Assembly: GCA_964247055.1 (NCBI GenBank)
Contig: OZ176056.1
Coordinates: 992,001 to 1,056,000, forward strand
DNA from: Paragordius varius
Taxonomy: Eukaryota; Animalia; Nematomorpha
Length of the DNA stretch: 64,000 bases
Reading direction: 5' to 3'
Shown here: piece after piece, positions 1,666 through 7,600 of the stretch
Layout: each line of letters opens with the position of its first letter
Numbering within the stretch: the stretch's first letter is position 1
The notes under the pieces: model-generated
What the model was told of the DNA's origin: nothing
The model's input: only the letters and a program-made list of their open reading frames with translations
Databases searched by the model: none
Program-made: the position numbers and the translations under genes

Positions 1666-4600
1666 TCATTTATCGCATGATTCGCTACACGGCGTCATAA
1701 TACTTTGGTTGAGGGTGTTTAATATAGGGTTTGTAGTTGTAACATCGTTTTCCGATACCATATTTCTTGTTTCATCAACGCACAGTTTATTATTACTGCT
1801 GGTTTCATTAGCATTCCAGGAAGATGCTGGGGATGCCACAGGTCCTCCGAAATTATTTTCTTCTGTGTTATGATGTTGACCAGTAAGTCCGCTTGAAACA
1901 TGGCCTTCGTTTTGTCCTCCATTACTGCTAGTTTGACTCGCAGTTGTTCCACCTCGAAACTTTTTGTGAGGAATGGAGGGATCTGATTCATTATTGTTGT
2001 TGCTCAACAATCCGTAATCAATAATGTTATTGTGGTGAGTTATATTTGTTGACAAGTTATGTTCGCTATGAGCATTCGATTGCGAGGAAGATGTTAACGC
2101 GTTAGTTTGTAAGATGTTTGGGTTAAAAGCATATTCATCGCTAAAATCCCCGCTACCACTTTTGGTAGTGGTCGCGTACATGCTTGTATCAACATCGTAT
2201 AAATTAGCTTCACAAAGAATATTAGCATTAGTATCATTGTTACTACTAAGAAAATCTGTACATGAATTTGTTGACATTTCTTCAATCACCTTCTTTTTAT
2301 GGTGGGTCCGGGGTTCTTTGGTTTTACCTTCACTGAAAGGCATGCATGTTTCGTTTTTTGCCTTATCCAAATTAAAATTATCCAAGGATTCTTCTTGAAA
2401 TTGGCTCCAAACCCGTTTCTTATGTTTGGTATAATTTGTGGAAGATGAGACTGCAATATTGTTGCCACTGATTGAAATATTATTACTGAAATGTGGATCA
2501 CTTTGTTGTTGTTGAGCAAACGATTCGCTTTCACCAAAATTTATGCTATTTTTAATATGAGGGGCCAATGGCGAAGCTTCGTTGTTATCAAATTTCCGAG
2601 AAAAATTCATATTATTATTATTATTATTACATTTGGTGTCGCTAATTACATTTTCAATGACTTGGGCCATTGTGCACGATGATGAAGGTGAATTTCGAGG
2701 TTGTTCAAAGGTTGAGAGATAGGGCGATGACCCTTTTTGTATACTATTGTTTGAATTGTTTATGGTGGAATTTACGTTTATGTTTTGGCCATTGCTGCCA
2801 TTATTGTTATATGAAATGTTATCAATTTCTTCGGTAGCCATAGATGCAGGTTCTTTCTTTATGGACTGATGAGAATTGTTATTGGTAAAATTATTTAAAC
2901 TATATTTGGGTTTCATATTGTGCGTATTTTCTGAAGCAACGGACGGAGATGCATATGATGAAGAGATAGCGTATTGAGATGCCATATTTCTATTATTTTT
3001 AGGCGTCACCGATTTTCTTGACGTGTTGTTAAGTCGATAATTATTAAATGCGTCTGATTCCCCATCCTCTCCACCCATATAAGCGATTTCTTGTTTAACG
3101 ATTGATGTGTTTGCAAATCGATGCTTAGCTGCTAAGCAGGTTTCATCCTGCATGCTTTTCAGGCCAACCTTTGATACGGAGCAAGTGGTGTTTAAAGATG
3201 CATCTTTATTAAGGTTAGGGGCGTTATCATGATATAACCGACTACCAGATACATTAGAGGATAATGTAGTTTGAGCCTGTGATATCGAACCATAACTATT
3301 GTGGGGATTAAAAGGTCTGGGGGGAGGGAGACCGCTTGCTGTTAAAGCAGCAGCTTGCTGCAATGCAAACAAAAGTTCGGGTGGAGGATGGCCCCCATTG
3401 CTCACGGCGGGTGGAATATTTAAAAGCGGCTTTTGATTAACTGCGTTCGATGCCGGGAACATATTATTGGCCAACATATTTGACATTGATAAAGCATTAG
3501 AAGAACTGTCTGCGTTTAGCATTAAATTTGGGTTTAGGTGAGGGAAATTCCCAAAACAACCAGCAGCCATCATATTTGGCGGTAGTCCAGAATAATTTAT
3601 GTTTGGGAAAATGGATGTTGTTGCCGAACTTATAGATGATGGGTGAGGATTCATAAAACGAGATGGATTGCTCATTTGAGGCATTCCACCTGGCGTTAAG
3701 TTTTGATTGTTGCTAGATGTCATTCCCCCTGTCGTCCCATTCCCACCCAACATGATATGTTGAGAGTATGCATTAAGCATCAGATTGTAATGATGTTGGG
3801 CCTGTAAAGCCGCGGCAGCTGGATGACTTAACATAAGCGTGTGAGGCGATAAAGAAGAAACCGCTGCAGAGCTGTGTATCGTACCACCTTGCATTATTAC
3901 AGGGTTATTTAAATTTAGTTGTCCCATCGATATATTGGGTGTCATCCCACTCATAAACGGATTGTTTCCAAGGTTGATGTTATCGTTACCTAAAACATTT
4001 GCCCCTGTATTATTAATTATTCCAGTTGATCCAACGCTATTTAGTGTCCGCATTTGTGACACGAAAAAATCCTTGTTGGTGTCATTATTGAAGCTAGTTT
4101 TTAAGTTTGCAGCGATATTATTATTGTTATTACAACAATATTGTATGGCGTTACGAATCACCGTAGTCACAAGCGAAGGGATATTTTGTTTTTCATGACT
4201 CGACAAGTTTGATGAACCAGCATTCAAGCAAGCCAAGATTGCTCGTCTGATTTCAAGGGCCGATTCTCGTCTCATTTCAGTCATAGCTATGTCGCTGTAC
4301 CAACTTACACCTGGTGTAACCAGTAGATTGGGTATTGAGAGATCATGGAATAAGGTTTCTATATTACATATATAAAAAAATTGAGAATTAAAATGTATAA
4401 TTTTAACGAAATACAGTAAAAATATAAATTATAAATTAAAGTATACTAATCTCGTATTTAATGGGTTATTCGGTTTAGTTTTTTGTTTTGTTTTAAACTT
4501 TTATCAATTATATTGGGTAATAATCATCTATTTTATCCTTTTTAACCTATTTTCTTTAGTAAGAAACTTTAATCACTAAAAAATTTTGATCATTCAGAAC

Positions 4601-7600
4601 CCATATATCTTTATTATTTTCTTAAAAATTATATTAATTTTTTATGAGATTTTAACATGTAATTAAAAAATATATAAGTTATCTTTATTAATTCCAATTT
4701 TTCATTGAAAACACATTTATAGGTAATTTTGTTAAATTGGAAAAATTAGTTTGAAACAAAAAAAGTAGTTTGAATAAAAAATTATGTTTTTAAATGAATA
4801 AATACATATATAATAAATAAAGAAAATTAGATTAAAAAATAAAAAATACATGCAAAAATTATGGTTGAACCCAAGATAAAAAATTTAAGGACCAACTTGA
4901 AATGCTCAAGGACACTCTTGACATGCAAATGGTATACTCAAAAATTATTATCTTACTAACCATTAACAAAAATAGGAATATATAAACTTTTTATTAAATG
5001 AGTAGTGGAGTTTGCCGCGTAAATAAAGTAAAATTTTATTTATAAAAGGCAATTTCCACATTATTATTGACTTTTCATGTTTGACTTTGAAATGATTTTA
5101 TAGCAAAACTAAAACAAGCAAGCAAAACTAAACTGTATAAAAAGTTAGAAAACATACTTGAAGATTCTAACGCTAATGGACAAACATCAAAGGCGGCACC
5201 CTTTATTCGACCACTTTTTAGGGCTTCAGCGATGGCCCATTCATCAATTTGTATTGACGACGATGAACAATAATTATTATTATTCTGATTCGTTCCAAAA
5301 TGATTATTAATAGGGGGGTCTGCAGGCATTGTAAAGGCATTTGCAGTACCTATAATACCTACAAGGTAGAGACCTGAAACCTTTACAAATCTCAATGTAT
5401 CCGCATCTATTATACAGCAGCAATTATTTTTCACTTCAGTCGTCGCACCAAAAAAAGAGTTTAAAGTATTATTAATATTATTATTGTTGATATTAAGTAC
5501 AAGAATATCACAAAGTGATATAAATTCTGACAATGTGGATATACGGGTAAGTCCCAAAACTTTTTCAGCACACATTAGTTCTTGAATTGTTGTGGCATTT
5601 GAACCCAAATTTTTTCCTGTATTGATAATATTTAGAGGGTTGGAGGGAATATGATAGATAACATTACAACCAAAAGCTTTAACTCGCTGGGATAGACATT
5701 GAGCAATTGAATCTGTAATGCATGTTTTTACAGTTGTATAAATAAAACAAAATAAAACATAATTATACCAAAATTACTAACATGTTTAAGACTGTTTTTT
5801 TTTCATATTCACCCTTAAACAATTTAAATTCACCCTCTAACAATCCAAATTCTTTGAACAATTCAAATTCACCCTAAATAAAATTATGTGTTTTCATACT
5901 AATATAACGCATTGATATGAAATATATCTTCATGGCATAGTATATTATTTTTTCAGCATTATTTTCATTTAAACAAAATTTTTATTTTTTAAAAATATAA
6001 TATATAAATATATAGGTATTTTTAATCTTAAAAAACATATAAATTGAAGGCGAATTTGAATTGTTCAAGGGTGTTAATTAGCTTAAATGGTATATATAGC
6101 AATTTTTTTAAAAAAAGGACAAATTCATGTAAATATATTAAATGTGAAAATAAAGAATTTTCGTCTCTACATCTTTTTGGTTCCAAACAATTTTAAAAAA
6201 GTTTGTTTGGGTTCCCAGTTATTATCCCTACTAAATTCATACTATGAAAAAACTACAGTATTGCAAAAATTTATAGTTTAAACTTGGATTTTAAAATAAA
6301 ATTTTATCGTAAACTATTATTGATTTTCAAAATAAAAATCTAACCTAATCCAAGTAAACCGATAGTTTGGCCTCTAAGCCGTGAGCAAGTTGGCAAATTT
6401 CCGTTTCCCCAATTAATAGAGCGGCCTGAAAGTAAGGTTTGAGTATCAGGTCCATTTAACATACTATGGTTACCTCCTATCACATAAATAAATATATTTT
6501 AAAATAAAAAAATTAAGATATATATATATATATATATATATTCTCGTTTGCAGTTCAACATCCTTGAACTCAAATTCACCCTCAAACGATTTAAATTTAA
6601 CCCTAAATTATGAGATTTTTAAGATTAAAAATTACCTTTAATTTGTAATATTTTAATATATGAAATGATGTTTAAAATTAATATAATACTGAAAAAATAA
6701 TAACTATGTCGTAAAAATATATTTCATATTAAATGATAAGTTATATTAATGCCTGAAAACACAAAACTTATTTTTAGGGTGAATTTGAATTATAAATGGT
6801 TAATCTATATTGAGAATTGCCTTTAGTTTGCTATATTTTTGATTCTTATAAACACTATTTGGCATACATGATATGTTAGTTCGTACATTAATTATTATTA
6901 TTCAATCCAATAATGATTACGATCAAATTCAAAAAAATTCAAGGATTTTTCTCAAAAGCTATAACATATCATATTTTCCGCAAAAAGATATAATCTTTCT
7001 ATCAGAAATTATAATTTTTTTTAACTCAAATGTCATTACCTTCATGCTTATTTAAAAAATATTATATTTTTTTCATGCGTTTTTACACACTCCTATAATT
7101 TATGATAAAAAAAACTAAAATCATTAATTTTAATACCCAAAATATCATTTTCTTCATGATTATTTAGGAGAATGTTAGTGTTAATGTTTTGTCCATTGAA
7201 ATGTGAAGTTAATCCATTATTTGTATTTGTATGATTGTTGGCAAATACGGAAGGAACTGGACTAGTTAAAAGGCTCGACAAATAATTCCAATTCTTTATA
7301 TGGCCTCTAACAATTGGATGCAATAAATTTTTTTTACAATTTTACTCAAAAAAAGAAATTAAAATTTTATTTAAAAAAGGTCCAAACCCCTAAGTAAAGG
7401 TATTTAAAATTTTAGCAAACTATTTTATTAGCGAAAAATAAATTTAAATTTCGTTTTTACACAATAAATATAAATTTAATAATACGTTTTTCTTGGTTAA
7501 ATTTCCATAACTTTTATGACTTAACATTTATCATGAAAGAAATCTAAAATTAAATCGAAATTATACAGACATGTAAACATAAAAGACACTATTTTACAAA

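Follow-up and report, generated by a model that had tools for sequence, protein, structure and literature searches.

The catalytic triad of the transcriptional corepressor CtBP is conserved in all bilaterians except the nematodes, in which one residue is lost, and its NAD-binding core is highly conserved; Nematomorpha were not among the groups sampled (PMC9907507). The C-terminal domain (CTD) is known to have undergone lineage-specific replacement in nematodes, flatworms and tardigrades (PMC9907507). Outside animals, the plant protein ANGUSTIFOLIA is a CtBP-like protein devoid of the conserved catalytic residues; it is ∼30% identical and non-orthologous to animal CtBP, acts in the cytoplasm and is inactive as a repressor in animal assays (PMC9907507). 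An engineered counterpart of a CtBP with a damaged cofactor pocket has also been described, the Gly172Glu mutant of CtBP1/BARS, which is defective in NADH binding (PMC6731274).

The window, i.e. the whole stretch of 64,000 nucleotides of Paragordius varius (Nematomorpha) DNA analysed here, contains a CtBP-coding gene on the minus strand (10744..1666), the spliced model of which has eight exons, 4299 nt and 1432 codons. The predicted product is a CtBP transcriptional corepressor. The exons of the model and two repeat arms in its introns are listed below (NBD, NAD-binding domain; numbering of conserved residues as in human CtBP1).

10493..10744, minus strand: exon 1; start codon (ATG) at 10744-10742, followed by an Asn-rich leader and the conserved N-terminal block of CtBP, which includes A52 and H63 of the PXDLS cleft; GT donor.
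8901..9045, minus strand: exon 2, N-lobe, starting with V66 of the PXDLS cleft.
8174..8384, minus strand: exon 3, the remaining N-lobe by alignment, with R141 kept and R142K; runs into a lineage-specific extension.
7738..7878, minus strand: exon 4 (141 nt), Asn/Ser-rich inter-domain linker insertion; open, phase-compatible, with AG/GT flanks.
7137..7306, minus strand: exon 5 (170 nt), Asn-rich linker insertion; frame open, phases consistent.
6345..6476, minus strand: exon 6, end of the linker and first Rossmann strand; ends with G (6345), base 1 of the Gly183-equivalent codon.
5158..5712, minus strand: exon 7, most of the NBD; begins with AT, completing G|AT, which encodes Asp351 of the model.
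1666..4358, minus strand: exon 8, return to the N-lobe, then the Asn/Ser-rich tail of ∼850 aa; stop codon at 1668-1666.
5912..6073, no strand: intron 6, left arm of a ∼160-nt inverted repeat, which is a multicopy intronic element; pairs with 6577-6732.
6577..6732, no strand: right arm of the inverted repeat, in intron 5.

The single stop codon of the model is the terminal one, exon phases are consistent, every intron is of the GT..AG type, and all 14 splice-site dinucleotides are intact. The exons have a GC content of 31–42% against 18–23% in the introns, the host genome being very AT-rich. With a stop chance of ∼0.06–0.07 per codon as the basis of the open-frame test, the 184 open codons of exon 7 have a P of ∼1.6e-6 (none of 2000 shuffles was open) and the 896 open codons of exon 8 a P of ∼4e-26; the longest open run in the introns of the gene is 54 codons. 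Open frames of this length in exons 7 and 8 greatly exceed chance expectation, and the locus is therefore not a decayed pseudogene; on the whole it is likely to be a real, intact protein-coding CtBP gene of a fast-evolving, AT-rich animal, its exon model being a predicted one. Sequencing runs labelled as possible RNA of this organism gave no match to the locus, and the runs that did contain it resemble DNA. For exon 5, 24 of 2000 shuffles were open, and the exon is needed because it connects the phase of exons 3 and 4 with that of exon 6. A homology search with exon 4 returned no match, and the junction between exons 7 and 8 (5158/4358) is based on frame and homology only.

Matches to CtBPs were obtained for exons 1, 2, 3, 7 and 8. 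Exon 1 matched PDB chains of CtBP1/2 in phmmer searches (E 8e-20, ∼85% identity across 46 aa), and so did exon 8 with 1mx3_A (E 8e-7), TPGVSWYS being aligned to TPHAAWYS; exon 7 matched CtBP1 in the PDB (E 6e-6), and tblastn with canonical CtBPs retrieved exon 2 (E 5e-13) and exon 3 (E 3e-5). The two-domain fold of D-2-hydroxyacid dehydrogenases (PF00389 plus PF02826) is recognizable, albeit with a sub-threshold PF00389 part: when the exons were scanned separately, exon 7 scored 31.7 bits against 2-Hacid_dh_C (PF02826), above the cut-off of 25.1, and exon 2 alone scored 18.5 bits (E 0.0017) against 2-Hacid_dh (PF00389), below the cut-off of 24.6. Structure prediction, suggested in the earlier note, yielded an AlphaFold2 model of exon 7 with Rossmann-like strands and helices, three disordered insertions, and CtBP1/2 as the top Foldseek matches, but the confidence of this model is low (pLDDT 51.6). 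In a maximum-likelihood tree the CtBP of the window could not be placed; the branch leading to it has a length of 5.4 changes per column, ∼85 times the median branch (0.064).

A MAFFT alignment of the model with 120 canonical animal CtBPs showed that the motif readings of the earlier note are all present in the places it gave for them. The dinucleotide motif is GLLGLDSIA instead of the canonical GIVGLGRxG, corresponding to G183D, R184S and G186A (Asp351, Ser352 and Ala354 of the model, all assigned to exon 7), and NVIYHIP replaces the canonical FYDP, giving D204I (Ile372, 5650-5648) at the acidic, ribose-binding residue that ends the second strand. Thus, in place of GxGxxG and D204, both invariant in 120/120 canonical sequences, the model has GLDSIA and an isoleucine. 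The R266 segment (5359-5249) reads LVGIIG, an insertion of ∼28 aa and SSSSI instead of LVNTARGG, with no arginine throughout, and VTPGVSWYS, i.e. TPGVSW for TPHAAW/F, entails H315G (Gly552, 4311-4309), as does the phmmer alignment to 1mx3_A. Of the catalytic triad R266/E295/H315, the arginine is therefore absent, the histidine is a glycine, and E295 is ambiguous, with a glutamate lying 1–2 residues out of register; the cofactor motif plus Arg/Glu/His combination of an active D-2-hydroxyacid dehydrogenase is not present. Tyr206, His236, Cys237, residues T264-R266 and G210 are changed as well. Every class of residue that canonical holding of NAD(H) requires is missing, including the second and third glycines of GxGxxG, as are R266 and H315, on which hydride transfer depends. 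The losses fall on columns that are invariant in 119–120 of the 120 canonical CtBPs (G183, R184, G186, D204, R266 and H315). At W318 the model does keep a Trp (Trp555). A universally conserved W318 was rejected, the column consisting of 82 Phe, 30 Trp and 7 Tyr among 120 sequences, and the argument from an 'oligomerisation Trp' is correspondingly weak. G183D, G186A, D204I, H315G and the absence of R266, all at invariant columns, argue that the canonical NAD(H) pocket and the dehydrogenase triad have been lost; at the level of sequence, the loss claimed in the earlier note is strongly supported, and the conclusion that the predicted protein lacks both canonical NAD(H) binding and catalysis is well supported.

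The remainder of the protein has been retained unevenly. Among columns invariant in canonical CtBPs, 54/62 are kept in the N-lobe (exons 1 and 2), as had been proposed for the PXDLS-binding part, 27/68 in the NBD and 10/13 in the C-terminal return. A residue-class tally gave a similar figure for the NBD: of 70 invariant columns 28 are identical, 16 conservatively and 26 radically substituted, the radical set including the cofactor and active-site residues. The N-lobe is the best-kept region of the protein; its N-terminal block is ∼72% identical to the consensus of canonical bilaterian CtBPs (human CtBP1/CtBP2, arthropod CtBP, Trichuris muris CtBP P0048 and Priapulus P0226), with A52, H63 and V66 of the PXDLS cleft identical. 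Also shared with these proteins are the two-domain layout, the dimer-interface arginines, the phase-1 intron in codon 183 and a long non-globular C-terminal tail after the core. R141, R163, R171 and R173 are among the residues kept, and R142 is replaced by lysine. Clear constraint acts on the N-lobe, which forms the cleft where PXDLS peptides dock, and on the C-terminal return. The window gene differs from the canonical proteins not only in GxDxxA, D204I, the missing R266, H315G and the changed R184 and G210, but also in its exceptional branch, an inter-domain linker insertion of ∼120 aa (end of exon 3, exons 4 and 5, start of exon 6), three NBD insertions, located in loops around the pocket, and a dissimilar tail. 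The latter is long and rich in Asn and Ser, has no alignable canonical CTD motif, and gave no Pfam family and no homologue in the Pfam and homology searches.

A natural parallel with partial loss is a nematode-type CtBP from a Logan contig (L003), which groups with Trichuris (support 88/87). It shares with the window gene an AT-rich genomic background, an Asn-rich leader and the loss of catalytic residues, NTARGG being replaced by INTCSMNL and TPH by TPN. However, L003 keeps GLGRIG and FYDP and should still bind NAD(H), whereas the window gene is without both. Gly172 of BARS corresponds to G183 of CtBP1-L through an 11-residue offset, with which the chain numbering in the PDB matches agrees. 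The Gly172Glu mutant, for which the title of PDB entry 3ga0 describes impaired NAD(H) binding and dimerisation, thus resembles the window protein in carrying an acidic side chain at the second glycine of the motif; in the window the change is natural, is to Asp rather than Glu and is accompanied by loss of D204, R184, R266, H315 and further residues, whereas the mutant is otherwise unaltered. The catalytic loss in L003 agrees with the published loss of one triad residue in nematodes (PMC9907507). ANGUSTIFOLIA, compared here from its description only, likewise lacks conserved catalytic residues, but the window gene possesses an animal-type N-terminal block (∼85% identical).

Taken together, we consider it likely that the locus is an intact CtBP gene whose product acts as an NAD(H)-independent scaffold corepressor. 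Such a CtBP-like protein would be unable to bind NAD(H) in the canonical way and would have no dehydrogenase activity, while PXDLS-motif repressors would still dock to it; assembly would proceed without cofactor through the retained dimer surface, perhaps aided by the Asn/Ser-rich linker and the tail. The 'redox-blind scaffold corepressor' of the earlier note is thus a reasonable proposal, although the extreme branch would also fit relaxed constraint. Assembly may simply have been lost: R184 and G210, residues of the tetramer interface that are reportedly invariant in bilaterians, are changed, and dimerisation of the Gly172Glu protein is impaired. A bolder version appears possible but doubtful, namely that CtBP is here fully uncoupled from NAD(H), that cofactor-driven tetramerisation has been replaced by self-association of the linker and a prion-like tail, and that zinc-finger repressors with PLDLS motifs, expanded specifically in this lineage, use the untouched PXDLS cleft; NAD binding would then be dispensable for CtBP-type corepression.

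Alternatives to the scaffold corepressor concern either the gene or the function of its product. An error of the gene model, with GxGxxG and the catalytic residues supplied to the real mRNA by exons that are alternative or have escaped recognition, is extremely improbable. Such exons could be sought in the long, repeat-containing introns, and there is a candidate in-frame alternative donor in exon 3 (8262|8261), use of which would bypass the lineage-specific extension; skipping of exon 4 or exon 6 would leave the frame intact. Yet splicing is unable to restore D204, R266 or H315: the first two positions fall in the interior of exon 7 and the third in that of exon 8, none of them close to a junction. 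The split of the Asp codon (G|AT) across intron 6 (6345 | 5712-5711), already described in the earlier note, is borne out: the exon 6 donor, G|GTTAGA, interrupts the codon that is also split, in the same phase, in the canonical CtBP genes L001 (G|GG) and L002 (G|GT), and this match to an ancestral intron position supports the 6345/5712 junction without recourse to RNA. Within the window no exon restoring GxGxxG was found: the introns of the gene contain no other ORF encoding GxGxx[GA], further matches in the window lying in the tail exon or in unrelated sequence, and tblastn with three canonical CtBPs revealed no exon beyond those modelled. The two inverted-repeat arms bracketing exon 6 are collinear and 70–77% complementary in a repeat search; contig depth at these positions is very high in run X5. 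Early decay under relaxed selection, with a frame left intact by chance or by the recency of the release, is very improbable. It is favoured by the very long branch and the many low-complexity Asn-rich insertions, but would have to accommodate 1432 stop-free codons, undamaged splice sites and blocks that remain 70–85% identical to human CtBP while the remainder has accumulated >5 changes per site, a pattern that requires continuing purifying selection.

We regard as unlikely that the gene belongs to a divergent paralogue that has undergone neo- or sub-functionalisation while a canonical NAD-binding CtBP elsewhere in the genome does the standard job; its branch is typical of a released duplicate, but the N-terminal block is kept as well as in true orthologues, the ancestral intron position is retained, and the literature reports a single CtBP gene across protostomes (PMC9907507). 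A cytoplasmic role of an NAD-free, constitutively monomeric protein instead of transcriptional repression, be it membrane fission as for CtBP1/BARS or an ANGUSTIFOLIA-like function, is decidedly unlikely. The Gly172Glu form of BARS, though NADH-blind, retains activity in the fission of COPI vesicles (PMC6731274), ANGUSTIFOLIA combines a cytoplasmic location with absent catalytic residues (PMC9907507), and the window protein carries substitutions at R184 and G210 of the tetramer interface. On the other hand, what is kept best is the PXDLS-docking N-lobe, which recruits DNA-binding repressors, and the dimer-interface arginines are retained. To our knowledge, moreover, the fission role of BARS is documented only in vertebrates. 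A remodelled pocket that accommodates a nucleotide or some other small ligand, the protein being non-canonical rather than cofactor-free, seems quite improbable: much of the Rossmann scaffold survives (G178, G181, F196-G197, N240, N243, G258 and D290-V291) and GxGxxA occurs in some dinucleotide-binding proteins, but most known contacts disappear through the combination of G183D, D204I and the changes at R184, Y206, H236, C237 and T264-R266, and the three insertions lie in the loops surrounding the pocket.

Whether NAD(H) is for CtBP a metabolic signal, a structural cofactor or dispensable, and whether the dehydrogenase site has any role in vivo, are long-standing questions. If a canonical copy exists elsewhere in the genome, or if the gene is silent, the present locus would be an ordinary fast-evolving paralogue. 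If, however, the scaffold corepressor reading is true, the gene would represent a natural separation-of-function allele, a bilaterian CtBP with the docking lobe but without the cofactor pocket and two triad residues, and comparison with nematode CtBPs, in which catalysis is lost and the pocket kept, would order the steps of loss. It may then provide a natural test of the need of CtBP for NAD.

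The CtBP gene occupies 10744..1666 on the minus strand of the window and was modelled as eight exons:

10744-10493, minus strand, exon 1 of the spliced model
9045-8901, minus strand, exon 2 of the spliced model
8384-8174, minus strand, exon 3 of the spliced model
7878-7738, minus strand, exon 4 of the spliced model
7306-7137, minus strand, exon 5 of the spliced model
6476-6345, minus strand, exon 6 of the spliced model
5712-5158, minus strand, exon 7 of the spliced model
4358-1666, minus strand, exon 8 of the spliced model

The joined coding sequence of 4299 nt is translated into a protein of 1432 aa (hereafter the model) with a single stop at its end, and all introns start with GT, end with AG and are compatible in phase. 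The 6345/5712 and 5158/4358 junctions, proposed in the earlier note, were obtained again in this exon model. The GC content of the exons (31–42%) exceeds that of the introns (18–23%), the genome as a whole being at ~25%. With the stop probability per codon taken as 0.06–0.07, the probability of a chance open frame is ~1.6e-6 over the 184 codons of exon 7 and ~4e-26 over the 896 codons of exon 8; neither exon was open in any of its 2000 shuffled versions, and the longest open run in the introns is 54 codons. Since exons 7 and 8 are open far past chance, the gene is not a decayed pseudogene.

Matches to CtBP chains were obtained with the conserved part of exon 1 (CtBP1/CtBP2, E 8e-20, ~85% identity across 46 residues), the start of exon 8 (E 8e-7) and exon 7 (E 6e-6). 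Exon 7 also passes the cut-off of the Pfam family 2-Hacid_dh_C and retrieved only 2-Hacid_dh_C clusters in a language-model look-up. Exon 3 alone and exon 6 alone matched nothing in PDB, and a protein-collection search with exon 7 did not return even its own protein; the collection seems to be without this genome and its close relatives. A phmmer search of 1.84 billion representatives, with the conserved 47-aa part of exon 1 as query, yielded mostly exon-sized fragments and was the source of the Trichuris muris CtBP (P0048) and of three loci used below, the canonical CtBP genes L001 and L002 and the nematode-type L003. A weak tblastn match elsewhere in the window (60935-61039) was taken as chance, the ORFs there being blank.

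A search seeded with P0048 provided 120 CtBPs, mainly from arthropods but including Priapulus, annelid and sturgeon sequences; being the best-scoring matches, they are canonical by selection and illustrate the norm, not the absence of other degenerate CtBPs. They were aligned with the first 640 residues of the model using MAFFT, and human CtBP1 numbering was verified at four anchors.

Substitutions in the NAD pocket and catalytic site of the model (human CtBP1 numbering), with the residue frequency in the canonical set.
G183: Asp in the model; Gly in 120/120
R184: Ser in the model; Arg in 120/120
G186: Ala in the model; Gly in 120/120
D204: Ile in the model; Asp in 120/120
Y206: Ser in the model; Tyr in 120/120
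G210: Asn in the model; Gly in 120/120
H236: Asn in the model; His in 118/120
C237: Ile in the model; Cys in 120/120
R266: Arg absent from the whole segment in the model; Arg in 120/120
H315: Gly in the model; His in 119/120

The alignment confirms the motif losses that the earlier note had read from the gene. D290 is retained, and E295 is ambiguous, a Glu being found 1–2 positions away. The Trp at position 318, previously cited as a conserved oligomerisation residue, is indeed present, but carries little weight because 82 of the 120 canonical CtBPs have Phe there.

Conservation is unevenly distributed along the protein. Invariant columns are retained at 54 of 62 positions in the PXDLS-docking N-lobe (exons 1 and 2), 10 of 19 in exon 3, 27 of 68 in the NAD-binding domain and 10 of 13 in the C-terminal return. 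Within the PXDLS cleft the model keeps A52, H63 and V66, and it also keeps R141, R163, R171, R173, G178 and G181, with R142 replaced by Lys; R141, R142, R163 and R171 are presumably dimerisation residues, a role known from structural work on CtBP1. When the invariant columns of the NAD-binding domain were classed by type of change, 28 were identical, 16 conservative and 26 radical. Because the radical class contains the cofactor and active-site positions, the decay of this domain is, judging from the alignment, targeted rather than uniform.

Among the sequencing runs compared with the window, those containing the locus look like DNA, three runs presumed to be RNA of the same species yielded no match, and a run of organism B gave short pieces dominated by repeats, too few for dN/dS. 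Whether splicing could restore the motifs is addressed by three sequence arguments, which stand in for RNA evidence. The intron interrupting the G183 codon has the same place and phase in L001 and L002, both located on long eukaryotic contigs, and the junction is ancestral; with slashes marking the boundaries, it reads GGATTG G/GT..AG/GT CGC and GGCTTA G/GT..AG/GG CGC in these genes and GGATTA G/GT..AG/AT TCA in the window, the Asp codon arising by a G to A change at the second codon position. D204I and the loss of R266 are internal to exon 7, as H315G is to exon 8, and all three are far from junctions. Finally, no ORF encoding GxGxx[GA] was found in the introns of the gene, and tblastn of three canonical CtBPs against the window revealed no additional exon. 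The 5158/4358 junction is based on frame and on alignment with GPLKDAPNLI; the matching intron is at a different place in L002 and L003.

Alternative isoforms are conceivable, and they leave the motif losses untouched. A phase 1, in-frame donor (GTCTGA) between 8262 and 8261 within exon 3 would join exon 3 to exon 6, giving a predicted isoform of 1299 aa in which the ~130-aa Asn-rich linker is gone and the inter-domain distance is near-canonical. Skipping of exon 4 or of exon 6 (132 nt) would also preserve the frame. The arms of a ~160-nt inverted repeat (5912-6073 and 6577-6732, 70–77% complementary), each a copy of an intronic element present in very high numbers, bracket exon 6, and base-pairing between such flanks could promote skipping of the exon or back-splicing. 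Introns 5–7 contain short recurring motifs, AATTCAAATTCACCCT among them, in both orientations (4301-5100, 5701-6100 and 6501-6900); since their contig depth in sequencing run X5 (organism B) reaches hundreds to thousands, they are probably MITE-like multicopy elements. For window positions 3101-9100 the same run contains both window-identical pieces and pieces 6–8% diverged (for example, 10 differences over 160 nt in exon 7), which suggests two haplotypes or a mix of closely related species.

The inter-domain linker of the model carries ~120 extra residues (end of exon 3, exons 4 and 5, start of exon 6), and the NAD-binding domain has three insertions of ~20, ~17 and ~28 aa. A low-confidence AF2 model of exon 7 alone (pLDDT 51.6), built from a 29-row alignment and used solely for element order, displays Rossmann-type strands and helices in canonical order with the three insertions disordered, and Foldseek ranked CtBP1/2 at the top (TM ~0.37), which together tentatively suggest that the Rossmann scaffold is retained. 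The tail (1666-4130) has 136 Asn and 121 Ser in the final 853 residues and no Pfam match, and a homologue search with the 872-aa tail ORF found none, its candidate list being saturated by low-complexity words. Short basic patches in the tail (e.g. KHKKR, HHKKK) could be nuclear-import signals.

In a published survey, from whose sampling Nematomorpha were absent, the bilaterian catalytic triad was universally conserved except in nematodes, where one residue is lost, the tetramer residues R, G and L were completely conserved, and protostomes had one CtBP gene (PMC9907507). Literature searches on 'CtBP pseudoenzyme' and on the run accession of L003 found nothing relevant. In our tree the terminal branch of the model is 5.43 changes per column (median 0.064), and long-branch effects left it unplaced. 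The CtBP gene L003 lies at positions 860-2320 of a Logan contig (run SRR10825152). It comes from a genome at 23% GC, has introns ~40–50 nt long and groups with the nematode Trichuris (support 88/87). It retains GLGRIG and FYDP, with INTCSMNL in place of NTARGG and TPN in place of TPH. Both L003 and the window's CtBP lack the catalytic Arg and His, and of the two only L003 retains the NAD motif; its product would be naturally catalytic-dead and probably still NAD-binding, and L003 represents an intermediate state of loss. The otherwise canonical CtBP of L001 (19903-20106), which groups with vertebrate sequences, has VNTAHGS, that is, His for the catalytic Arg266.

Regarding the effect of the changes, we take G172 of BARS to be G183 of CtBP1, through the 11-residue offset between short and long isoforms, which is consistent with the chain numbering in the PDB matches of exons 7 and 8. 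According to the title of PDB entry 3ga0, G172E in CtBP1/BARS impairs NAD(H) binding and dimerisation, and the BARS mutant is described as defective in NADH binding (PMC6731274). The same glycine is changed in the window's gene, to Asp. In Rossmann folds, the adenine ribose is held by the acidic residue with which the second strand ends; in the window's CtBP this position is Ile. With G183D, D204I and the other altered contacts combined, the protein is very unlikely to bind NAD(H) in the canonical way, and hydride transfer would be excluded because Arg266 and His315 are absent. The loss of cofactor binding and catalysis advanced in the earlier note is therefore well supported at the sequence level. 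Given that the docking lobe is the best-conserved part of the protein, it is plausible that the Paragordius CtBP would function as a scaffold corepressor.
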